From: Geosiphon pyriformis uo1
Lineage: Eukaryota; Fungi; Glomeromycota
Direction of reading: 5' to 3'
DNA: 64,000 bases
Assembly (NCBI GenBank): GCA_016748015.1
Contig: JAAOMT010000620.1
Span: 36,940 to 100,939, forward strand
Shown here: in pieces, positions 3,201 to 32,434 of the stretch
Layout of the letters: each line of letters starts with the position of its first letter
Numbering within the stretch: the stretch's first letter is position 1
The notes under the pieces: model-generated
What the model saw: only the letters and a program-made list of their open reading frames with translations
Database searches by the model: none
What the model was told of the DNA's origin: nothing
Made by a program: the position numbers and the translations under genes

Positions 3201-5900
3201 AACTAATGTTTATTAATATAATATAATAATTAATATTAAAAATTTATTTGAATAGTAAACTTGTTAATTAAAAAACAAACTTTAAATACTATTATTAATT
3301 AAAACAAAGTTTATGTACTTTTTAATTTTTTTAAAATAAACTATATAAAAAGCCTATACAATGAAAAACTATTAAGAAAATCAAATAAATTTATATTTAA
3401 AAATTTTCTAAAACTTATATTGTAACCAGAATTATTTTTATTAAAATTACTACTAAAAACTATATATATACTACTATTTAAAGCTTTAACTATTATAGAA
3501 TTAATATTGCTAATCTTGTAGAGTATATTAGTCAGCTAGCTAAAAAGTTAAATATATTTATGTCAATAGTTTTTTAGTTTAACTCTGAATGTTAGTTGTT
3601 AATAATTTCTTTATTACAAAATTAAAGAATGAATATAGTGATGAATAAAAGTTCAAATATAGTTATTAACAATAAAACTATTATTAAAGCAGTGTTTTTA
3701 AATTTATTAAGTTTTTTGAAATTGAAAAATAATATAAAAAAATTGTTGGATATAATTTTAAGACTTTTGGCCAAAGTAAACAATTTTGATTTGGTTTTAG
3801 GCTTTTGCTTTTTTCAATAACCAGTTTTATTTGAAAAATTACTATATATAATATTAAAAAGATGAACAATTCTATTGAATAAAAGAATATTATTTGCTAA
3901 CATAAAAATAAGAGCAATTTTATATCTATTATTATAAAAACAAAACTTAAATATAAGATTTGTCCTTAAATTATAAGTAAATTTAAAGAGATTAAAGTTT
4001 TTACTTTAAAAGTCAACTTTAATTATTTAAGTTTTGGTGTTGTAGTAATAATTAACAATAATATTGCTAAATATATATGCAAAATATTAAAGATTATTGG
4101 TTGATTTTTGTCAATATATTTGTTATTTAAGAATTGTTTTTTGATTTTTATTTTGGGTTTATATATTAGTGCTACTTTAAAAAAAATTAATTCAGTTTTA
4201 TAAAACTGTGTTCAAAAATAGTAAACTTATTATTTATTTTTAATATAATTAGTAAAAAAGACTTTATTCTATAGAAAAACCAATTTTTGAAGACTTATTA
4301 TACAGAAAAAAAGAGAGAAATAAGAAACTACCAACAACTTTTGCTTAGAAAACTCTACTAAAAGATATTAGATAAACAATAGAAGCTAAATATTTAGTGT
4401 AAATAATAGCAAGCCTGTTTTTATTTGTTTTTTAAAAGAATTTTATAAGAAAATTTACCTAAAAAGACTTTTTTATCATTAGCATAATTAATTAATATAT
4501 GATCTAATTTTTTATACTTAGCATATTTGGTTATATTCAAATAAAACCAGTACAAATTACACTACTTAGAACTGGTATGATATTTATGATAGCATTTAAT
4601 GAATTAGCAAAATTAAAACAAACTATTATATACTTGGCTTAAATATATATAACAGAATAATAATTAATTACACATGTTTTCTTATCCATAAATTTAATAA
4701 AGTCTTAAATATTATGTGTATTTGTTTTTATTAACAATATATAAAGCAGTATTCTATTATAATTCTTTGTAGTTTATGTTTTTTTGTTCATATTAGTTTT
4801 AATAATTCTTATAAAATCTTTTCTAATTAGGATAGATTATTTTGTTATAGTCAAATTAACATAATTAGATTGCTTAAATTCAATTATAGTCTTCTATTAT
4901 ATTCTTATCAATTATATTTTAATTGACACAATTATTCTAAATTTAGATTGCATAGTTTTAACTAATATTCTAATTAATATTTTCTTAATTATTATAGTTT
5001 AATTTAAATACTTAGCAAATTTTCTGAGATTGGTATTTATTAAGATGTTTATAGTTCTTGTCTTTTTTATTGCTTATGCTAAGTTTAATTTAGAAGTAAA
5101 TAATATATAAATAATTTTAGCAAATTTTAAGAAAATAGAAATTTTTTCAAAATCATTGATTTAAAAAACAAATTTCTAATTATTTTTAACTTTTTTTAAG
5201 AAGACTTTCTTATTATAGCATCTAAACTAATATTTAAAATAAAAATTTCTCTAACAGACACATTAATTAGATTTTTAAAAAAAAACAAAATTACAGAAAT
5301 ATTCAAAAAAATATTATTTTTATTTTTACTTATAAACTTGATTTTTTTTAAAAATGTGTTTAATGCTTTTTTGATTACTAATTTAAGTTTTTTAGATGTC
5401 AGATTTAGGTTGTTTTTATTTAAAATATTTTTTTGTTGTAATTTATACTGGTTTTTTTCATTAAAAATTCTTTTTTTATATTAATACTATTAAATTTAAT
5501 AGTATTATTGGTCTTAAAATCCTAAAAACAATCAATTATTTTCTTGGCAAACAACTTTTTATTAATAATATTAATTTCTAAAACATTATATTTTTTCTTT
5601 TTTCTAGAAAAAACATTCTTGTTAACAATATTAAAACCAGAGTTTTTGGCAAATTTTTTTATAATAGCAATATTAAAACCAATAATAGTCTTGTAATTAA
5701 ATAGTATATAATAACAACTAAAAACTTTTTTATTAAAATTAAAACTTTTTGATAATTATTGAAATAAATAAAAGAAAAAATTAATAAATTTAAATAAAAA
5801 AATATATTATAAACAGTATAAATATTAATTAAATACTTATTTAAAAACAAATTAAACAAAAAAACAAAAAATTAAATTCAATAAAATTTAAATTATTTTT
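290..5900 (-). mobile_element. Heavily AT-degraded LINE of the same family as 52044-58806, 3'-truncated within RNase H, with an internal inversion at 3510-4200
   Basis: Minus-strand translations line up in order with the intact copy: SRKKRK (~5600), NVSVREIFILNI (~5250), RILLYIL (~4740), SKFYRLELLVLRI (~2900), WIFMIPKSYK (~2195), WLVL*NMSKAYNS (~1945), GAFINNTI*IG (FVDD motif, ~1585), SIYTDSL (RNase H, ~525). Boundaries are approximate. Confidence 0.85.
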
Positions 5901-6769
5901 GTTGTGTTTTAAACAATATTTTTTTGATTATGTATTAAATATAAATAATTATTTATATAATAAAAAAAATTTTTGACTATTTTATAAAAAAAACTACTTT
6001 TTTATTATAAATTTAAGTAAATAAATAACAAAAAAAATTATTAAAAATAATTAAAATAATAATAAAATAATATTGTTATTATTATTTTTTTACTGATTAT
6101 TAAAAATAAATACCAAAATTTTTTTAAATTAAAAGTATTATTATTATTATTTTGTTGTTTAAAAATTCACAAAACTATAATATATATTTTTTATAATAAA
6201 AATAATAAATTAATAATTTTGTAAAAAATATAAAATATTAATATAAAAGTTATTAAACTTAAATATATAGATATGCTTAAAATAAAAAATTAAATAAGCA
6301 TTTAAATAAAAACTTGTTAAATACTTAAATAAAATAAAAACAAATAGTTTTTTTAATTTATATTGCTTAATATAAGTTTAAATTATTAGTTATATATAAA
6401 AAATATGTAAGTAATATTTTTGTTACATATTTTAAGTTTTAATTAAATTATATTTAATTAAAAATAACATTATTAAATTTGTTTTATTTTTAAATTAAAT
6501 ATATAAACTTATTTAACAAGTTTAAAATTAATATAAAGTTACATAGATATATGCAAAAAAATATATTTAATACTGGTTTAATTTTTTCTAATTTTAAAAC
6601 TTACAGTTATTTTTTTTTTAAAATAATAAAACGAATTTTATTCAATATTAAAATATAATAATCTTAATTTAACAAAACAAAAATAATTTAATGAATATTG
6701 CATAATACAATAATTATTAAAAAAACAAATATATTATAGAGTAAAAACTCTTGTAATTTAACAAAGATG

Positions 6770-8819
6770 GATTTGTTACCTAAATAGTAAATTTATACTG
6801 ATAAATCAAAGATCTGAAACATCATTGACATGAACTAAACATATATTAGGCCATATCTTCCCAAACTATAACAAACACAAAACATCATGTCTGAAAATAT
6901 TAAATGTGAATTAAAATACGTTAAAACCCATATGGGAGATGTATAGAAAAGCTATATAGATTAGAAAAGTTGAAGAAGAATCTGAGAGAAAAGGAGAATA
7001 TAGACGAAAAGCAAAAAAAAAAGTGGATAGAAGAAAAGGAAGAGTTGCAAGAAGAAGTGAAAGAGCTAAAAAAGAGTAAAGATAGATAGAAGTTACAGAT
7101 TGAAAAATTACAAGATCACTTTATAAAAACTAATAAGACAAGTAACAACTTCGTAACTTGAGATATAGATTAGAGCTTAACAAATTTGTAAATCAGTTTT
7201 CCATCCATAACTATTCATTTATTTTGTAATTACATGCGTTTTATGGAAGGAATGTCCATTTTTAAGAGAATATTTGGTGTATAATGCCTATTTTTTTCTA
7301 TTTTCTATGATTATTCTAAAACACTTTGTGAAGTGTGTTAGACTTGACATCCCTGACAACACCTTATCATTTTTACAACTTTTCTGTTCTTCCTTCAATA
7401 AACCAATCACATGCAGCAATCTTGAACACTGTTTTACCTCAGTGTTACTTCAAAAATTGCCAGCTATATCCCATCTTTGCCGGAACTATGGGAATTATCT
7501 TGTATCTATAGATTCAGATCCTCTCTACAATGTTCCTAGATTGTTAGCAATTGTTACTATTATTTTCAGTAAGTCCTTTACCGAAAGTTCTTGACAAGAA
7601 CAACGAACTGCAGATGGTATCAATAATCACATTTTGGACATGATTACACTGTTAAAACAATGTTTCACAACTCCATCACTAAACTGGAAATGTAATGAAA
7701 AAATAAATGATACAAGTACTATTACAGATAAAAGCATTTAGCCAGATATCACAGTTTATTGCAACGACTTGCTTGTAATAATTAGTGAAGAAAAAGATAT
7801 TAAGAAAAACATATTAAATGCAGCAGAACAACTGAATGGTTATTTTAAATTTTGGAATCCACTTGCCTTTGGTAACTTACCATTTGTTCTAGCCCTTGTA
7901 GTGAAAGGTACACATTTGCAATTTTACTATTACTATGTGGATAATACAACGGGCTTGACACTAAGACATGAGACAATTGGCAAATCTCTAATCCTTGATG
8001 GTCTAAACCAAGTATACAATTATCAAGTGCTTCAATACACAATCAATTTTTTTTGGATTCTTCGAACCTTGTGTCAAAATCAGTATATCACAGCTCCAAT
8101 ATTGAGGTTATACAATAATATCCAATGGTCACATTGTGTTGTTACAATATTCCCCCACAAGAATGTAAAAAAATAGATAGATCAAATATTGTTGATTTAG
8201 ATTTCCATAAAGAATTTTACCAAAATATACTTCCAGACTTAAGGCCAATCAGAGTTCTTGACTATTACCTTACAAATCACTCAGTAGTAGTATATTTGGC
8301 TCTAGTTGGCTTTAAGACATTTCTTGAATGTGAACCCGAGCTGCGAGATGCTATACGGCATGTACTTGTAATGCTAGAAAAACTTCATAAGATGAACGTT
8401 ATTCATTAGAATATTTGCTGGGATAATGTTTTAAAACTCTTGGATGATAGTTGGATGTTAATTGATTTTGAAGAAGCTGCTCCCTTAGGAGCTTCAAGAT
8501 ACAATGATAAAAAAATTTCGACTTATGGTTAGACATGTTTGCTAATTGTTGCTATTTACTTTACAAAGAGATTCATTGGCTATTGGAGCTCCAGAATATG
8601 GGGGAAAACTTTTGTAGTACTGCAGGCAATATATAGATGGTTGGAAATCTTTTCAAACATACCAGAATTTACAACCATATTTTACTTTCTTCATCTGCTC
8701 AACAGTTTAGGGAAAAATTGATGAACAAAAATTCTAATAGTCGACTGACTGCAAATGATGCTCTAAAAGATGAATGGTTTAATTTGCCAGAGGAGCAATT
8801 ATCTATAATACAAGCTTAG
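6770..8819 (+). pseudogene. Crinkler-like protein: coiled-coil N-terminus, PD-(D/E)xK REase-like region and protein kinase domain; disrupted
   Basis: EK-rich coiled coil at 6960-7140, then an apparent intron (GT at ~7142). PDITVYCNDLLVIISEEK resembles a PD..ExK motif. Kinase motifs LEKLHKMNVIH*NICWDN, LIDFEEA, GAPEY, NI*MVGNL and RLTANDALKDEWF. Several in-frame stops and frameshifts. Confidence 0.75.
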
Positions 8820-9399
8820 ATTTTTAAACACATATTAAATGTACTGATGTACAATTATATTATACAAGTTTTATTATTTGTCTTAATTTTTAAATTTGTC
8901 TTTGTTTTTTTATATTTTCAGAATTAAAAAAGTATTTTATTTTTTTAGCTGTTAATAACTGTATTTTTTATTTTAGATTTTTTAAATAATACATTATTTT
9001 TTGTATAAAAAATATGTGATGCTTATTTTAATTTGTAATAATTTTAAGTTTAAAATATTAATATTAACAATTTTATAAAAAAACCAAATTTGATTATGTT
9101 TTGTTTGTATGTAACCAGTTATCTAAATTAGTTAAAACAATATTATATTTTAAATAAAATATATTCTGGCTAATTTATTATATATATTACTAATTAAAAA
9201 TGGAAAAAAAAATTTATATTATTAATTAAACTTAAATAATTAAAAAATTGCAATTTTCTTTTTTAATTTAATATTATTAAACTTGTTATTTTTGGTATAA
9301 TTAAATTTATTTTTTAAATTATATTAACTTTAAAAACTTTTTTTTGTATATAATATTATTTAAATAAAAAAATAACAAAATAACAAAATTAATTAATTT

Positions 9400-12300
9400 T
9401 TTATTTTTATGTTTAATAAATACAGTTCAACCATTACTTAATATACAAAAACAAACTAAGTAAATCTAACTAAATATGATTCACATGTTTACTATATGTG
9501 ATCAGTTACTTGAACCAATTATAACTTTTATTATAAAGTTTTGTTCTAATTTTAACTAATAGTCTTTTATAGATTGCTTTTATTAAATATATGCCAAAAA
9601 CAGCTGCAGTTTTGTTAGTAAACTTTGAAAATATGTAAAAGTTTAAATATCAAACTACAGTCATACTAGTTTAGTTTATAGTTTAATAGATATTATTAAC
9701 AAAGTAATAAGTATTTTTTAATATAACTTAACTATTAATTACAATAAACTTCTTGTAAATTTCAGCAAAAAAAATAAGACAAAACTGTATTATATACAAA
9801 AACATTAGCTTTATTATTATTTATATCTTTTAAATAACTTTTAATTTTTACTTATTTAATAAAAATATTTTTTAATTTAACTAAATTAGCCATATAATAT
9901 TTTTTTATTTAATACTTGTTCCAAAAATTAAACAAATAAAATCTAAACTCTAAAACACATATATTTATAATAGCTTAACTATTTATATACAAAATTATTA
10001 AGCAGAAAAAAAAATATTTTATTACTAAGACAATTATTTGTAATTTCAATATTATTAAAAATAACAATTCATGTACTTTTATATCTATATCTATTTTACT
10101 ATTAGAAAAATAAGTTATTACTTTACTAACCACCTTTACAATACTTAAATACTTTAAAAAATTATTAGTATAAACATTAAAAATATCTGTTTATAATCTA
10201 TATAAATATTTTCAAATATCCAAAAAAAATTTTAAACACAAAAAATTTAACCAACCAAAAATAAGAGCAATCTTATTAAGTTTAGTAAAAAATTATTTAT
10301 AAAAACTGAAGTTTTTTTAAATTACAATAGTACTAAGTCTTTAAGACTTAATTTTTTTTAATATAAAAAGTCTTTTAATTTATAACTAATTTGTATTTAT
10401 CTAATAACTTGTCTCTAAAAATAATATTAAAATGTTTTAAAGAGTAAATTATCTTAAAATAATAAAAATATTCTAAAATTCTAGACATTAAAAAGTAGTA
10501 AAAACCACAAAATATGCTGGGCAAGTTGTTGATAAAAGAAATCTGATTATTCAAAAAATTTTCATAATGTTCATTAAATAATTATTTATAAGACTAACTT
10601 TTAGCTTAACTAAATACTATAATAAGTTTATAAGTATTTATTCTAAAACTTACAAATTCAAAAAATAGTGTTTAAATAATTGGACAAAGATTTTAATTGT
10701 ATTAGAGAATTAAATTACTAAAGCTATTTTGCTTTTTGTTTGTATCTGTTTAAAAAACTTTAATTTATATAAAAATAAATAGTATAAAGTTTGATTAGAA
10801 AAATTTCTAAGCAAATTGGTTTTAAATTTAAACTTTTTTTTAATCATAATATTTTATTTTTAACATATACTTTTAAATATATAATTAAATTGTATTATAT
10901 AATTTACTATAAGTTAAAAAATTGCTAAGACCAAATAAAAAACTGTTTATTTAACAATACTTTTTTAAAAATTAAATTCAAAAAAAAACTTAATATTTAA
11001 ATATGCCTTAACAAAACTTAACTTAGACATATTTTCTGTTGACAAAAAAATTCCAAGTACCTATAAGATTTTCTATACTTAACAATAAAAATTGGTTAAT
11101 TATTAATGTACAAAAAATATTTACAATTTTTTAATTAATGAAAATTACTATTGTCTTATTATTATTAATAGAAATATTATTAATCCTAAAAAACTTATTA
11201 ATAATATCCAAAATATGCTGTCTTAAAGCTTATCTAAATTGTATTATCAATAAAAACACTAATTGCAAAAAAAGAAAATTTTTCTATTGATCTTTACTTT
11301 ATTTATTTTTGCTACAAAATTAGTGTTAATTTTATATTTACATAAATGTTTATATCTTTTTATTTTACATAATAATAGGTCATAAAAAATCTTTTAAAAA
11401 AACAGAGAAAATATTTTACTTTAGTTAAACCTATCTTATACTTTGTAATTATCTAAAAGACCTAAATTAGTCATTAATTTGTTGATTTTATTTATATATA
11501 TATATTTTTAAAAAACTTAATAAACTTATTGTATATCTTAATATACTTTAAACTAGCTTCTAAATAATATTAATTAACTAAATTATATGTTTTGCACATA
11601 TTTTGCAGAACTAATAAAAACTTTTGGCTTTTTTTCAAAATATTTTCTACTATTAAACCAATAGCAAACCCAAGAGATTGGATTAAAATATCTTTCAAAA
11701 CCAAGAAATTGGTATTTTAAAAAACATTATATTTATTATGACAAAAAAATACAATTCAAAAAAATTTTGTTAAAAATTTTTTTAGTCATCTTAATAAATA
11801 CAATAGATTATATATTTATAAAAATACTATTCTAATAATAAAGCTTGAAAATTATTAAAACTTATACTCTTTTTTAAAAAACTAAAACATTGTCAAAAAT
11901 TAAACAAAACTTTAATAGATTTAAAAAACATCTTATTATCATGTTATTATAATGTTTTTAAAGTTTATTTAATATTTTAAACAAACTGACAACTTTGTTA
12001 TCAAACAGACTATTTATAACTAAAACTAATTTATTTATTCAGATCTTATTTATTATACCAAAAAATATTTTTTTTTTTAGTATATACTAGTAAAATCACA
12101 AATTAGACAGCACTATAAGTACTTTTTACTTTTTTATCTAGCTTATTATAATTTTATTAACTTTAAGTTTTATTTTATTTGGTTTTAGAACCAATTTTTT
12201 CTTAACTACCAAATAGTTTAAAATTATTTTTTAAAAGATTATTTTAAAATACTTTTTATTATGTTCTCTTTATTAAAACTAAAACTTTTTATTTGTTTCT

Positions 12301-13065: not shown

Positions 13066-15445
13066 ATGTCTTCAAATTCATTTACTAAAAATGCAACTTC
13101 AACTTTTGACTGGCTTAAAGAAACATTGATTGTTATTAAAGAAAATTTGGCCATTTTTTCAGCTATTGAATATTCAAAAGTTGCTGAATTAGTGAAAAAA
13201 TATCTTGTATGCAATCAGAAAACACCTGAAAATTTGTTTGATTGCTTAAATAAGAAAAATCTAAAGCATTTAATAGACAATATTTTATTTGGCTTTTTTT
13301 TAGAACATGAGATTGAAACTATTTCTAATTTAACAAAAACATTTTTAAAATATCAGAAAGCAGCAAATACAAAAAATTTTCTTGAACAATTTTTTTTAAA
13401 ACATTGTTATAATACTGAAACTAGTAGTTCTTAAGATTAAGAAAAAGCATATAAATTCTATTTAAAAGCTACAGAAGTGAAAAATTTAAATACATAATAC
13501 AATCTTGCATTTTTTTATACTAATGGAGAAAAAATGACAAGAAATTCAGAAAAAGCATTTGAACTTTATTTAAAAGCAGCAGAGGTGGGACATTTAAATG
13601 CACAATACAATCTTGCACTTTATTATAATAATAGAGAAAAACAACAAAAAATTCAGAAAAAGCATTTGAACTTTATTCAAAAGCAGCAAAAGTAGGACAT
13701 TTACTTGGACAAATTACTCTTAAAACATATTATCAAAATTGATTAGAAACAATAGAAAATTCAGAAAAAGTAATAAATTCAAATTTACAAACCAGTATTG
13801 GAATATATTATCAAAAGAAATGGGAAATAGTAAAAAATTTAGAAGAAACATTTCAATTCTATTTAAAAACAACAAAAGTAGAAAATTAAAATACACAATA
13901 TAACCTTGAATAGTGTTATCAAAATAGATAAAAAACTACAAAAAACTTCCAAAAAGCATTTAAACTCTATTTAAAAGCAGCAAAAGCAAATAGCTTATGT
14001 TATCAAAGTGATTTTCTTGATTTGAATGTTTATGATCTTTTTTTAAAGAACCAAGACAATCTGAAATATATTATTTTATGATTTCAAAATTGAGACTTTA
14101 AATACTGCAATAATTTGAAAGAAGAATTTTTAAATTTTGAAGTTTTCTTTGACTAGTTTTCAAATAAATTCAAGTGTTTTAAATGTGACAACTTGGATAT
14201 AATTATTAATAAATCTTCTATATGTCCATTTTGTAATATTAATAAAAAGAATAATATTTTTAAAGTCGAATTGCCAAAATGTTGGTGTAAATTTTGTGAA
14301 AATTCACAATTTTACAAAATTTGAAGAACATAGAATAGTGAAAATGATAATATTAATTATTATATCACATATATACAATGCTTTTCTGAAAATTGCAGAG
14401 GTCATCTAAAATAGATTTCTCCTAATGAGATCAAGTTATTAGATAAGATAAAAGAGGAAAAATTTGGTATTATTAAAAAAAGTAGTTGAAAGAAAGGCAA
14501 AATTCTATTTTGGAAAAAAAAAATTAAATGTATGAACAAACTGAAGTTACAAAAATTGCTTTAAAGTATTTTAAAAATAGCCAGAATATAAAATATATTA
14601 ATGCAGATATGGTATTTTATTTTAAGAATCTATGTTATTTTTATTATTTTTTTCTAAATATAAAACTATATTTGTGTAGTTTATTGCACATCATTAAAGT
14701 GCTACTTGCAAATATATTTTTGAATGTTATGAAATCACAAAAAACATTACAACCAATGAATATGTTATGGTTTTACTATTTGTAAAACATAAAGATCTTG
14801 GAGTTTTTCTCAAGTTAAATAAAAATATTTTTATTTGAAACATATTTTTTTGTATTCTTTTTTAAATTGCTGGTAGTCTATAATTTATTTATAAATTAAA
14901 ACTAGTGCATGAGAATTTGCATCCTGGAAATATCTTTGTTTTAAAAACAAACTTCTTAAAAGTTGTTATTTTTGATCTTGAACTCTGTTGTTCTACAGAT
15001 TACATTCCACAGTCTAGAAAAATTTATGGTGTTCTTAAGTATTTTGCATCTGAAATTTGCAAGGAGAGTTATCATATTAAGTATAGTAATATATACAGCT
15101 TTGCTATTATTTCATGTAAAATTATATTGAGAGAAAAATCTTTGAATAATACACATCCTATTCATGTATGCTTTGACATAATTGATGAAAAACATTCTAT
15201 AATCAAACAATATACACTTCAATGTATTTGGGAAATAATTGAAAAAAATTGGGAATATGATCTGTATTGTTGTGATAATGCAGAACAGTTTCAACAAAGT
15301 GTTATTGCTGCTTATAATTATTGTAACTTAAATCAACTTATATGTGAAAAAATACTTCAATTTAAAGAGACACAAGATGTTATTTAAGATAATACAAAAT
15401 ATAGAAGCTTGTTAATTTCAAAACCTAAATTTTCTACAAATAGTA
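13066..15445 (+). pseudogene. Sel1-like repeat plus tyrosine-kinase-like (TKL) kinase gene; disrupted
   Basis: ORF 13066-13434 is followed by Sel1 repeats (KAFELYLKAAEVGHLNAQYNLALYY; KAFELYSKAAKVGH). Kinase N-lobe KIKEEKFGIIKK, a likely intron at ~14612-14679, then HENLHPGNI, IFDLELC, IYGVLKYFASE and NIYSFAII. Many stops, and catalytic residues are decayed. Confidence 0.8.
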
Positions 15446-25924: not shown

Positions 25925-26392
25925 TTATGGTAACAAACGAGCCACTGAACAGAATAATGGAGCATTGGTGGATTTTTCTACAATTCTAACACTAAGAGCG
26001 GTACCAATGATAGAGTGTGGCGCCTTTACATGGGTTGTTATTGTGAATTTTATTCCTGATCCAACCGGACAACTTTGTCCTCCTCGCAAATGACTGCAAA
26101 AACTTTTACTAACAGAACCTATATCATCATTTCGAGCATTAGAAAATCCAGCAAAAATCGTGGCTGAGTCGATAGTTTTAGCTGCTATTCCAGTAGCAGT
26201 AATTTTTATTATTTCTCCAGCGGCAAAAGCTGCAGGTTCGATTGTTACAGCGATAAAATCGGGCTGAGGAACAGCATTGCATGGTACAAATAAAGGAGTA
26301 AAAGATTTTGAGGTAGAAGAATTTTGTGGAATAGCATTGATCATTGAGATCGTAACTAATAAAACAACAACAAAATAAAAATTTCGTTTCAT
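25925..26392 (-). CDS. Secreted ML (MD-2-related lipid-recognition)-like protein, 155 aa
   Basis: Intact ORF with signal peptide MKRNFYFVVVLLVTISMINA-IP and four Cys in ML-like spacing (FVPC; FC..7..CPV..G..F; LFC). CpGs are retained. Confidence 0.8.
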   Translation of the reverse strand: MKRNFYFVVVLLVTISMINAIPQNSSTSKSFTPLFVPCNAVPQPDFIAVTIEPAAFAAGEIIKITATGIAAKTIDSATIFAGFSNARNDDIGSVSKSFCSHLRGGQSCPVGSGIKFTITTHVKAPHSIIGTALSVRIVEKSTNAPLFCSVARLLP

Positions 26393-27189: not shown

Positions 27190-27448
27190 GTAAAAGGGTT
27201 TTCCATAATTTATTATTCTGAGGATTAGAATGAGAATTTTTTGACAGAAATTTTCGCATATCTCCACATTCAGCAAACTCCATCACAACCCCATACTCGA
27301 GTGTTTCACTATTTTGAGTAATCACTATTATTAGAGGCATATGAAGAATTTCCCAACCTCAATAAACATAACTCTTTGTATATTTATATGTTAAAAGTGA
27401 AAAAATAGTTAATTAAATAATATATATAATAGCTAATAATAATAGCTA

Positions 27449-27510
<62 letters not shown>

Positions 27511-27700
27511 CTCTTTAAAGAGTTCTTCATTCTTCTGTAAAGATGTGTTTATAAACTTTATTGATACCTCCTTCTCTTTTGTAAATTTATAATCCATTTC
27601 GCCATGATGTTTAATACTATTTAAATGGATTAATCCATCAATCCATTTTGCTTTATAAATAACACGAAATTCTCCCTTTGCAATTTTATTGATATCCTTT
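27190..27700 (-). pseudogene. TKL kinase N-lobe fragment with a microsatellite-containing intron
   Basis: KIAKGEFRVIYKAKWIDG...EVSIKFI...ELFKE, then a GT donor at 27510, then ITQNSETLEYGVVMEFAECGDMRKFL. No C-lobe found. Confidence 0.7.
27436..27509. repeat. (TAA)n microsatellite at the 5' end of the kinase-fragment intron
   Basis: About 20 consecutive TAA units with an interrupted left edge. Confidence 0.9.
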
Positions 27701-29385: not shown

Positions 29386-29964
29386 CAATTTGAAAAAATT
29401 AAACAATTAAAATTAAATTCAGTTAATATGGTCACATAATTGGTATGCGTATAGAATTCTTTATTCAATTTCTGGTCTAGAATGAGTCAATTTTTTGGTT
29501 TGTTCTGTTAAATTTTAAGTAATGGTGAAAGATTTTCTTTACTAACGAAACCGGTAGTTGTAAGAAAATCTGATAGAAAGATTTTGAGAAAAAAGAATTT
29601 GTGGTTCTTGACAAGTTTTAATTTAATAACAACAAATTTATCAGATCTTTGGTAAAATTAATTACATTATGTAAAACAAGTCGAAATTTAAAAATTTTAG
29701 ATGAATAATTAAATACAAGATTATTATCTATATAATTTGGTTGCGAATAGTCACGATAGGTTTAACTTTGAGTTCATTATTAATGGCTAGTTAATGATTT
29801 AAAGAGTTCAATTTGGATGTCAACTAATTTGAATAAAGTCCTGACGTTTTCCTGAGATTTTGATCAGAAACTTTCACGAATTTCGATTCGGTGAAAAGTT
29901 TACGCACAAAGAATAATGGCGGTGTCAAGAAAAGTGACTTCTCAATAACAATACTCTACAAATT

Positions 29965-30096
29965 TTACATAATAGAGCATTGTCCGGTACCGCTACCATC
30001 GTCTGGGTCACCGGTTGGTCCTTTAATAGAGCCGTTTCCAGGAGCAATTATTGATAAAGGATTGAATGAAGATTGATTGTTGGTTGTTGGTTGCAT
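29965..30096 (-). CDS. 43-aa CaaX-terminated peptide, candidate a-factor-like lipopeptide pheromone precursor (MQPTTNNQSSFNPLSIIAPGNGSIKGPTGDPDDGSGTGQCSIM)
   Basis: Manually translated intact ORF (ATG 30096, TAA 29965) with an A-rich start context (aaagaaaATG), C-terminal CSIM, upstream TATAAAA and five retained CpGs. Ungapped similarity to S. cerevisiae Mfa1. Confidence 0.7.
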   Translation of the reverse strand: MQPTTNNQSSFNPLSIIAPGNGSIKGPTGDPDDGSGTGQCSIM

Positions 30097-30216
30097 TTTC
30101 TTTAAGTTTTTTGATTGATTTACTTTGAATGTTGTTATAGTTTTTTTCTTTTCTTTTCTTTTCTTTTAGTTGTTTTAGTTTGATTGAATGAAAAGAAATT
30201 GGGAGAGCACAACCAA

Positions 30217-30223
30217 TTTTATA
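30217..30223 (-). promoter_or_regulatory. TATA box (TATAAAA) of the CaaX peptide gene
   Basis: TATAAAA ~120 nt upstream of the ATG, followed by a pyrimidine-rich then A-rich 5'-UTR-like tract. Confidence 0.5.
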
Positions 30224-30264
30224 GAAAAAATTCATAGCCTTCATATTAACACCTGTCATTAAAC

Positions 30265-30622
30265 ACAATGTAAATTGAAACAGAATGTTAAAAACCAAGA
30301 TTTTTGACAATAACCGATATAATTTATTGTTCTATTTTAATTAATAATTCGGCAGACCCCCATTGTTAAGCTATCCAAACAATGTCTAAAATGCAAATAA
30401 TATTCAAAATTTAATTTAATTTAATCATTATCAGTGGAATAGAGCAGACGGAGCATTGTTTTTTGATATCATCTTAACTAGTACATTCATTTTCAAATTC
30501 AGCCATTAAGGAGATTTATTAAGTGTTTATGGGGTATCTGTGAATTAATTAACAATGCTAAAAACAGGTTTTTTTTAAGCATGTGGGACATTGTTGTACG
30601 AAGAATATATATACGAACAATG
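30265..30622. promoter_or_regulatory. Cluster of HMG-box-type sites (AACAATG/CATTGTT x6) plus one TGAAACA (Ste12 PRE consensus)
   Basis: CATTGTT at 30361, 30454, 30589; AACAATG at 30378, 30551, 30616; ACAATG at 30265; ATTGTT at 30326; TGAAACA at 30276. Confidence 0.55.
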
Positions 30623-30689
30623 CTAAAAAGTATTACTCTAAAGTTACGATTATCCAATTTCTGTTAATAATTGTGCTATGGACAAATAT

Positions 30690-31818: not shown

Positions 31819-32434
31819 TTTTATAAAGAAAATAACAATTGTAAAATATTTTTCTATTTTCCAGAAATAAAAAGTAAAGCTTTCATTGTTCTTCTATAGA
31901 TATAATGGTAAACTAAATACAGTGTTACAAATTGTATTATAGCTTTCAATTTAATCTTGATATTTGTAAATTTCATTTTTTAGTGTGACAATTTTCGATT
32001 TTGAATGGCTCATCATGTCCAACTGAAAAAAAAATGGTTTCTACAATTTTTACATTTTATTTTTAATGAAAACCTTATTTTAAACAATGATTCCACTTTT
32101 AATCTTGATTTGAATTTAAAAGCTTGTTAAAAACAAAAAAAACTTTCAGAAATCTAAAGTAGAATGTGCAACATAGATTTCAAACTAGGCATTGTTCTTC
32201 AGGGACCTTAATATTATATCATGTTCTTGTGACGCTATGTCTAACGTGCCACTTGTATACTAAAGAAATTTTCAAAGGATATGAGAGTTCGATAAATTTT
32301 TAAATGTAGTTTTAAGGCATGCAATTGAAAACCCATTAAACGTATTGTGTTATCTAGTAGTCAGCTTTATTTCCTATTGTGTCTATTCATTAGAAGCTTC
32401 AAAATATTTGCCTTTATTATTTTAATTAACAATG
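31819..32434 (-). promoter_or_regulatory. TATA box and HMG-box-type sites upstream of the 59-aa ORF
   Basis: TATAAAA at 31825-31819 (minus); CATTGTT at 31884 and 32190; AACAATG at 32083 and 32428. Confidence 0.4.

Follow-up and report, generated by a model that had tools for sequence, protein, structure and literature searches.

A multicopy family of short CaaX peptides in Geosiphon pyriformis, shared with Ambispora and proposed to encode a-factor-type lipopeptide precursors

A 43-codon open reading frame (ORF) in the genome of Geosiphon pyriformis (Glomeromycota, Archaeosporales) was found to be a real gene that is under strong purifying selection over its full length, including the codons of its C-terminal CaaX box. 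It lies within a stretch of 64,000 nucleotides (C778:36940-100939 of the assembly, which has 128 Mb in 792 contigs), referred to here as the window, and coordinates given without a contig are positions in that window. The gene belongs to a family with 33 intact copies in Geosiphon and with relatives in a second genus, Ambispora, and it encodes a free-standing peptide of about 43 residues with a CaaX end. The evidence below makes it fairly probable that the ORF functions as one member of a multicopy family encoding the precursor of an a-factor-type farnesyl peptide, a proposal that agrees with every testable feature. An earlier note, written from the letters of the window alone, had put forward such a pheromone gene, and its 43-residue translation was reproduced exactly. 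The note did not state the strand, which is the minus strand; a plus-strand reading of the same interval was rejected, as it contains stops throughout. The peptide has a polar N-terminus with no hydrophobic signal sequence, and its last four residues are Cys-Ser-Ile-Met.

A six-frame search of the whole Geosiphon assembly with this peptide gave 37 matches, 33 of them intact 43-codon ORFs and 4 of them degenerate. Most copies are in arrays spaced at 2-4 kb; C729 has two of these arrays, further ones are on C578, C551 and C622, and a divergent pair is on contig C657. The copy in the window stands alone. Its closest relative is on C469 and is 93.7% identical across 3 kb, and in a tree of the 0.7-kb units these two copies make up one of about six deep lineages. 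Eight distinct peptides are encoded by the family in Geosiphon, and the same peptide is found in 24 copies, which have 21 distinct coding sequences. All 33 nucleotide sites that vary among those 24 copies are synonymous (32 third positions and one first position of a Leu codon), and between the window copy and the other canonical copies there are 13-18 differences in 132 nucleotides, none of which alters an amino acid. Roughly 77% of random changes would be nonsynonymous (99.5 of 129 sites), and by our arithmetic 33 silent sites out of 33 would have P < 1e-20 under neutrality. Gene conversion can be ruled out as the cause of the identical peptides, because conversion would also have erased the silent differences. 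When all 33 intact copies were compared, the proportion of synonymous differences (pS) was 0.39 and that of nonsynonymous differences (pN) was 0.017, for a pN/pS of 0.044. CSIM followed directly by the stop ends every one of the intact copies, and the degenerate copies retain CSIM or CLIM. The codons for Cys40, Ser41 and Ile42 vary silently, and therefore the CaaX box itself must be translated and selected. With 33 intact paralogues and silent-only differences among the 24 copies that share a peptide, the ORF goes well beyond what chance would give.

Conservation is highest over the ORF. Per-column identity is about 0.63 just before the ATG, rises to 0.95 in the first 20 nucleotides of the ORF and drops again past the invariant stop. 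The earlier note had allowed that the ORF might prove to be the last exon of a longer prenylated protein, but this does not hold: the ATG is invariant across copies, the jump in conservation occurs there, most copies have an in-frame stop 1-8 codons before it (leaving open frames of 44-51 residues), and public gene models start at the same ATG. Those public models do splice away near the end of the ORF into downstream exons or neighbouring genes, giving products of 50-792 residues, and this joining, along with the presence of at least 37 repeats with alignable flanks, is what could be said for regarding the ORF as no independent gene at all, either as a chance reading frame in a repeat or transposon or as an initial or terminal exon of longer proteins. 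However, different copies are fused to different partners (class 3 lipases, a kelch protein, a membrane protein of about 750 residues) and several models remove CaaX codons that are under selection. Because the partners are unrelated between copies and selected codons are deleted, the spliced models are best seen as prediction artefacts. Moreover, the synonymous-only substitutions, including those in CaaX codons that several models splice out, can be explained solely by translation in this frame, the position of the stop is invariant in the 33 Geosiphon copies and in 6 Ambispora copies, and the repeated unit of about 1 kb contains no transposase and no other ORF. The idea that this is not an independent gene can be given next to no weight.

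Each of the public models of family members loses either the CaaX box or the stop (G9A89_ models P0001-P0012 and P0015 in Geosiphon; P0014, P0016-P0018, P0020 and P0021 in Ambispora), and the annotated copies are a minority of the 33 in Geosiphon. As a result of this mis-modelled annotation in both genera, searches of public proteomes miss or distort the genes of the family.

A profile of the eight Geosiphon peptides, run against 1.84 billion representative proteins, returned four Ambispora models besides Geosiphon models. When Ambispora genomic DNA was read unspliced, five clustered ORFs of 39-43 codons were found on contig CAJVPS010001016.1 of Ambispora leptoticha and one was found in Ambispora gerdemannii. 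Five of these six ORFs end in CVIM-stop, and the sixth, which has an internal deletion, ends in CIIW-stop. Precursors are short in both genera (43 residues in Geosiphon, 39-43 in Ambispora). The Ambispora peptides are 59-74% identical to the window peptide over its full length, with 15 columns invariant across both genera, among them N21, G26-P27-T28, D30, Q39, C40 and I42, and the C-terminal half is the part best conserved between the genera. Among the A. leptoticha paralogues pN/pS is 0.03-0.16, and between the genera it is 0.2-0.3 with pS near saturation. The family has been under selection since before the split between Geosiphon and Ambispora. The earlier note had named a lack of relatives retaining the CaaX end as grounds for giving up its proposal; such relatives exist, both as the 33 intact Geosiphon copies and in another genus.

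Wider searches returned the same two genera. A second profile search, covering 5.8 billion proteins, added a few Ambispora models, and Geosiphon and Ambispora were the only genera represented. A scan of Joint Genome Institute (JGI) metagenome contigs gave 216 pattern matches, 0 of which were confirmed, and no match to a family peptide was found among the sequences of solved structures. Two long repeat proteins, P0013 and P0019, were rejected as relatives, as their match to the profile came solely through Gly/Pro/Asp-rich repeats.

The distribution of variation along the peptide bears on whether it could instead be an MSDIN-like ribosomal peptide, cyclic or otherwise processed, in which a prolyl oligopeptidase excises a brief hydrophobic segment between two prolines, residues 14-19, and the CaaX-like end is a recognition tail. 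The family is indeed a multicopy set of ORFs of about 40 residues, and residues 14-19, which come after Pro13 and end with Pro19, are the most variable part of the peptide in both genera. However, MSDIN cores of Amanita are hypervariable, whereas the supposed core here is nearly invariant within the genome, being identical in 24 Geosiphon copies and showing only conservative changes elsewhere. The stronger conservation of the C-terminal half also argues against an excised core, and a mere recognition tail would not need a Cys at position -4 and a stop that are kept across genera as CSIM or CVIM with silent codon change. An MSDIN-like product is thus highly improbable.

Conservation extends to the promoter. 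The earlier note had placed a TATA box about 120 nucleotides upstream of the ORF, and the sequence TATAAAA is indeed present there (Table 1); 31 of the 33 Geosiphon copies have a TATA box at -103 to -147, and the A. leptoticha copies for which there is upstream sequence have one at -114 to -138. Further upstream is an inverted pair of sites, CATTGTT-N10-AACAATG, AACAATG being the consensus site of SOX/MATA-type HMG-box proteins. The pair is exact in 18 of the 33 copies and is present in 26 if up to 2 mismatches or a spacer of 9-11 nucleotides are allowed. It occurs in all of the deep lineages of the family and is absent from L032 and L033, the copies whose peptides have drifted. In the window the pair is part of an upstream cluster that holds 6 of the 20 AACAATG sites of the window, whereas about 0.08 would be expected in an interval of that size; the total of 20 matches that of shuffled sequence. 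Among hexamers, CAATGC, ACAATG and AACAAT are the most over-represented in the 400 nucleotides upstream of the 33 copies, where AACAATG itself averages 2.1 occurrences per copy, compared with 0 in the 400 nucleotides downstream and a window background of 0.125 per 400 bp. Four copies in the 16-kb locus of A. leptoticha have upstream sequence, and 7 of the 10 AACAATG sites of the locus lie in the 320 bp upstream of these copies, against an expectation of about 0.8. A promoter architecture made up of a TATA box and HMG consensus sites is conserved in both genera. The family is probably controlled by an HMG-box factor through CATTGTT-N10-AACAATG, binding being predicted from the motif. HMG-box factors drive pheromone genes in other fungi (Prf1 of Ustilago maydis, Mat2 of Cryptococcus neoformans and Ste11 of Schizosaccharomyces pombe; reviewed in PMC7490403), and encounters between different Rhizophagus isolates induce HMG-box genes (PMC7490403). 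A looser group of four AACAATG sites is found at 31884-32434 of the window, 1.8-2.3 kb upstream of the gene, in DNA with no family sequence or evident ORF.

The farnesylation, trimming, methylation, export, STE3 perception and biological role of the peptide are inferred from these sequences and can be arranged as follows. The gene would be transcribed from its TATA promoter, probably under an HMG-box factor acting on the inverted pair, and the 43-residue precursor, whose sequence contains no signal peptide, would be made in the cytosol. Cys40 of CSIM would then be farnesylated, the last three residues would be cut off by Ste24 and the new C-terminus would be methylated by ICMT, genes for both of these enzymes being present. 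The N-terminal part would be trimmed, perhaps after the invariant N21, and the resulting lipopeptide would be exported by an ABCB-type pump and sensed by a single STE3-type receptor encoded on contig C642. Its role could be mate recognition, conspecific signalling or hyphal-fusion signalling. Because one peptide dominates and there is a single receptor gene, the signalling is possibly autocrine or population-level rather than a system of two mating types.

For the receptor and processing genes, six-frame matches were judged for each exon separately, without joined gene models. The set to which the earlier note had pointed was recovered in part: a STE3-type receptor, prenyltransferase beta subunits, Ste24 and ICMT are present, whereas an Axl1-type protease was not detected and the ABC transporters could not be assigned to STE6. 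The STE3-type receptor is at a single locus (C642:334886-335808), where two adjacent exons score 148 and 75 bits, and its open first exon starts at an ATG. ICMT matched at two loci (98 bits) and the N-domain of Ste24 was found with 156 bits. Prenyltransferase beta subunits matched at three loci, the number expected for FTase, GGTase-I and RabGGTase. STE2 was not found in a genome search that had no positive control. In an earlier survey (Halary et al. 2013; PMC3834313), arbuscular mycorrhizal fungi (AMF) were reported to have STE3 and STE6 with no identifiable pheromone gene, and STE6 was reported in Rhizophagus (PMC3834313). CSIM is also the farnesylated motif at the C-terminus of prelamin A, a substrate of the Ste24 family that is farnesylated, trimmed and methylated in a manner dependent on ZMPSTE24 (PMC7431821). 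Prelamin A, however, is a large nuclear protein that is not exported, and the resemblance is one of modification signal only.

Two loci noted in the course of these searches can be mentioned here. A single-exon gene for a 604-residue homeodomain protein (C657:364671-366485, minus strand; L046:2671-4485) lies 21 kb from the divergent peptide pair on C657. It was considered as a linkage resembling a mating-type (MAT) locus and rejected: the gene is highly conserved in Ambispora, Paraglomus and Endogonales and looks like an ordinary developmental homeobox gene, and we estimate p of about 0.06 for such proximity by chance. On C141, a small contig, ABC_membrane matches at 4960-11749 lie in intron-free frames of up to 2850 residues, which could be bacterial or cyanobacterial DNA.

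The earlier note had also counted 11 ungapped identities between the window peptide and Mfa1, the a-factor precursor of Saccharomyces cerevisiae, and this count is correct (11 of 36 positions). Shuffling residues 2-39 of the peptide gave a mean of 3.2 identities, with 11 or more in 2 of 100,000 trials, so that p is 2e-5 at a fixed offset and 1.2e-4 if any offset is allowed, values that apply to one comparator chosen after the fact. The quoted numbering of Mfa1 (A8, P10, Y22, C33) agrees with PMC2134810, according to which mature a-factor begins at Y22. The columns at which N21, I24-K25-G26 and D30-P31 match Mfa1 are invariant or near-invariant in the family. The match is suggestive and may reflect either shared ancestry or shared processing constraints; it does not establish homology.

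Like Mfa1 and Mfa2, the family members are short cytosolic precursors that have no signal peptide and carry the CaaX box directly before the stop. The likeness to Mfa1 includes the MQP start, IKG and DP at equal ungapped positions, and N21 as the residue that precedes the mature Y22, and Geosiphon shares with S. cerevisiae Ste24, ICMT, farnesyltransferase-type beta subunits and a STE3 receptor. However, there are also clear differences. The Cys of the family is 7 residues further from the DP pair than in Mfa1, the predicted mature part is hydrophilic and Gly/Asp-rich whereas that of a-factor is hydrophobic, at least 33 copies are present in Geosiphon compared with 2 in yeast, and Geosiphon has no known mating type or sexual cycle. 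In having several gene copies for one CaaX lipopeptide, Geosiphon resembles S. pombe (mfm1-3), U. maydis (mfa1/2) and C. neoformans (MFalpha/MFa), although its copy number is ten times higher. The pheromone promoters of those fungi contain sites for HMG-box factors (Ste11, Prf1 and Mat2; PMC7490403), in parallel to the AACAATG pair, but the elements described there are of the ACAAAG type whereas those of Geosiphon are predicted sites of the SOX type. Furthermore, the genes in those three fungi are mating-type specific and those of the basidiomycetes are linked to the receptor, whereas the Geosiphon copies are off the STE3 contig. Another class of candidate peptide signal has been described in Glomeromycota, namely the Kex2-processed, alpha-factor-like repeat peptides of Rhizophagus irregularis (PMC6339444). 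These differ in having signal peptides and Kex2/Ste13 repeats and in using the secretory pathway, and they would match a STE2-type receptor, while the Geosiphon family is of the CaaX class, which fits STE3.

Several results weigh against the proposal that the family encodes a-factor-type precursors. The whole precursor is conserved, at about 70% between the genera, which is unusually high for a pheromone, as Dikarya pheromone precursors usually evolve fast. To our knowledge there is no precedent for more than 30 near-identical pheromone copies. Single-sequence, two profile and metagenome searches gave no convincing relatives outside the Archaeosporales, though small genes are rarely annotated, so that a blank does not amount to absence. 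Four family members had no match to any Pfam family at E values up to 10, and thus none to a curated pheromone family; the curated Pfam pheromone families are lineage-specific, and the missing match limits the claim of homology and not that of mechanism. Of the processing genes, Rce1 (PF02517) was not detected in the six-frame search, for which the target may be short or broken by introns; for yeast a-factor, Ste24 by itself is described as sufficient (PMC2148179). The M16A middle domain (PF16187, Axl1/Ste23 type) likewise had no match in six frames, where introns could hide the gene, and several full-size ABC_membrane genes are present, no one of which was assigned as the STE6 orthologue. None of the 37 matches is on the STE3 contig C642, so that pheromone-receptor linkage of the basidiomycete P/R type is not seen at the contig level, although distant linkage is possible in an assembly of 792 contigs. 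Finally, no AACAATG site is found within 1.4 kb upstream of STE3.

The public sequence that might be taken for a transcript of the gene belongs with these points. The only public contig found is 444 nucleotides long, lies on 29731-30132 of the window and extends about 42 nucleotides further into the low-complexity leader. It comes from one public run of uncertain kind, for which the tool's guess is DNA. It differs from the window at nine positions and has the base of the C469 copy at each of them, which means that it originated from the sister copy and not from the window copy. The surrounding 3 kb are about 94% alike between these two copies, yet only the transcript-sized piece is present, and it is present without a joint. 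This would fit an unspliced small mRNA, but an assembly that breaks at the flanking low-complexity DNA could look alike.

Taken with these points, the pheromone proposal of the earlier note is upheld in part. The architecture of the precursor and the short, suggestive similarity stand, whereas no Pfam pheromone family is matched and the argument from retained CpGs fails. The ORF has 5 CpGs with an observed/expected ratio of 0.88, compared with 0.83 in the surrounding 10 kb and 0.49 in the whole window, and 12% of GC-matched 132-nucleotide windows reach the value of the ORF.

The high conservation of the entire precursor also speaks for the main alternative, in which the product is an intracellular prenylated micro-protein: its farnesyl tail would tether a conserved peptide of 39 residues to membranes in a structural or regulatory role, with no export or receptor. 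Strong selection acts along the whole peptide and not just on a short mature part, there is neither linkage to STE3 nor a promoter element in common with it, and the export step in the pheromone proposal is a predicted one. Nevertheless, the intracellular CaaX proteins known so far consist of folded domains to which a CaaX tail is attached, and we are not aware of a family in which free-standing, Gly/Pro/Asp-rich CaaX peptides of 43 residues have an intracellular role. More than 30 copies in tandem arrays suggest a large demand for a consumable product, and the HMG-site promoter is typical of pheromone genes. An orphan STE3 receptor also exists (PMC3834313 for AMF). An intracellular role is therefore considered rather unlikely.

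The extreme copy number would also fit a mass-produced secreted product that has a target other than the fungus's own STE3, such as a signal or effector meant for the symbiotic partner, which is Nostoc in the case of Geosiphon and plant roots in that of Ambispora, or for microbial competitors. An exported lipopeptide of this kind shares all of the sequence features of the proposed pheromone, and the family was seen in just two genera, both of them symbiotic and both of the same order. However, the partners of these genera are very different and yet the peptides are about 70% identical, the orphan STE3 receptor is the simplest target, and we know of no lipopeptide effector that is exported by the CaaX route. 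A role toward partners or competitors is regarded as improbable.

If the family does encode a-factor-type precursors, its significance lies in where it is found. CaaX lipopeptide pheromone precursors are well known in Dikarya, and a literature search found no report of one in Glomeromycota or in another non-Dikarya fungus. Fungi of the arbuscular mycorrhizal type have meiosis genes and a MAT-like locus but no observed sexual stage. The family offers a concrete and synthesisable ligand candidate for the glomeromycotan STE3, and it makes two ideas testable, namely that of partner recognition in these fungi and that of lipopeptide pheromones older than Dikarya. A wider proposal, which is put forward only tentatively and which we regard as somewhat doubtful, is that the family is the long-missing ligand of glomeromycotan STE3, that CaaX signalling predates Dikarya so that the MQP, IKG and DP identities would be true homology, and that the gene was amplified to more than 30 copies in Archaeosporales under HMG-box control, where it would serve conspecific recognition in cryptic sex or hyphal fusion, within a lineage that has long passed for asexual.

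Table 1. Features of the peptide gene and its flanks, in window coordinates
Feature	Position	Strand	Remarks
43-codon gene with TAA stop	29965..30096	minus	ORF check; ATG at 30096, last sense codon 29968-29970, stop TAA 29965-29967; peptide is the canonical family form
CaaX box codons, Cys40-Ser41-Ile42-Met43	29968..29979	minus	stop follows immediately; codons 40-42 vary silently among copies
Leader and core-promoter interval	30097..30216	minus	conserved blocks in paralogue profile and consensus; conserved A-rich context just before ATG; (AAAAG)n-like run 30133-30177
TATA box, TATAAAA	30217..30223	minus	starts 127 nucleotides upstream of ATG
Inverted pair CATTGTT-N10-AACAATG, SOX/HMG-box consensus sites	30361..30384	minus	-288 to -265 from ATG
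Six AACAATG sites	30361..30622	both	upstream cluster, 262 bp
3' flank, candidate 3' untranslated region	29731..29964	minus	alignable between paralogues
Whole paralogue-homologous unit, about 1 kb (promoter, ORF and 3' flank)	29658..30662	minus	blastn of all family units against the window; sole family copy in the window

Some neighbouring genes were also noted. Downstream of L033, the most divergent intact copy, at C704:509481-510774, and downstream of one A. leptoticha copy, at L045:4804-10253, there are homologous genes for membrane proteins of about 750 residues on the same strand as the peptide gene. These neighbours are 30% identical over 576 residues (E 1e-59) and have a weak match to the Ig-like domain Big_5. 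Synteny between the two genera is not established by this pair, because the neighbour family has at least 30 members in Geosiphon. The window itself contains, 3.6 kb downstream from the peptide gene, an intact ORF of 155 residues on the minus strand (25925-26392); it carries a signal-like segment at its N-terminus and matches the ML (MD-2-related lipid-recognition) domain of Pfam with 26.4 bits. A protein-kinase domain fragment (Pkinase / PK_Tyr_Ser-Thr) on the plus strand at 14905-15387 is probably a kinase exon or remnant, and a long simple-sequence tract with poly-Tyr and poly-Leu pseudo-ORFs, in which GC falls to about 15%, occupies 27384-27597.

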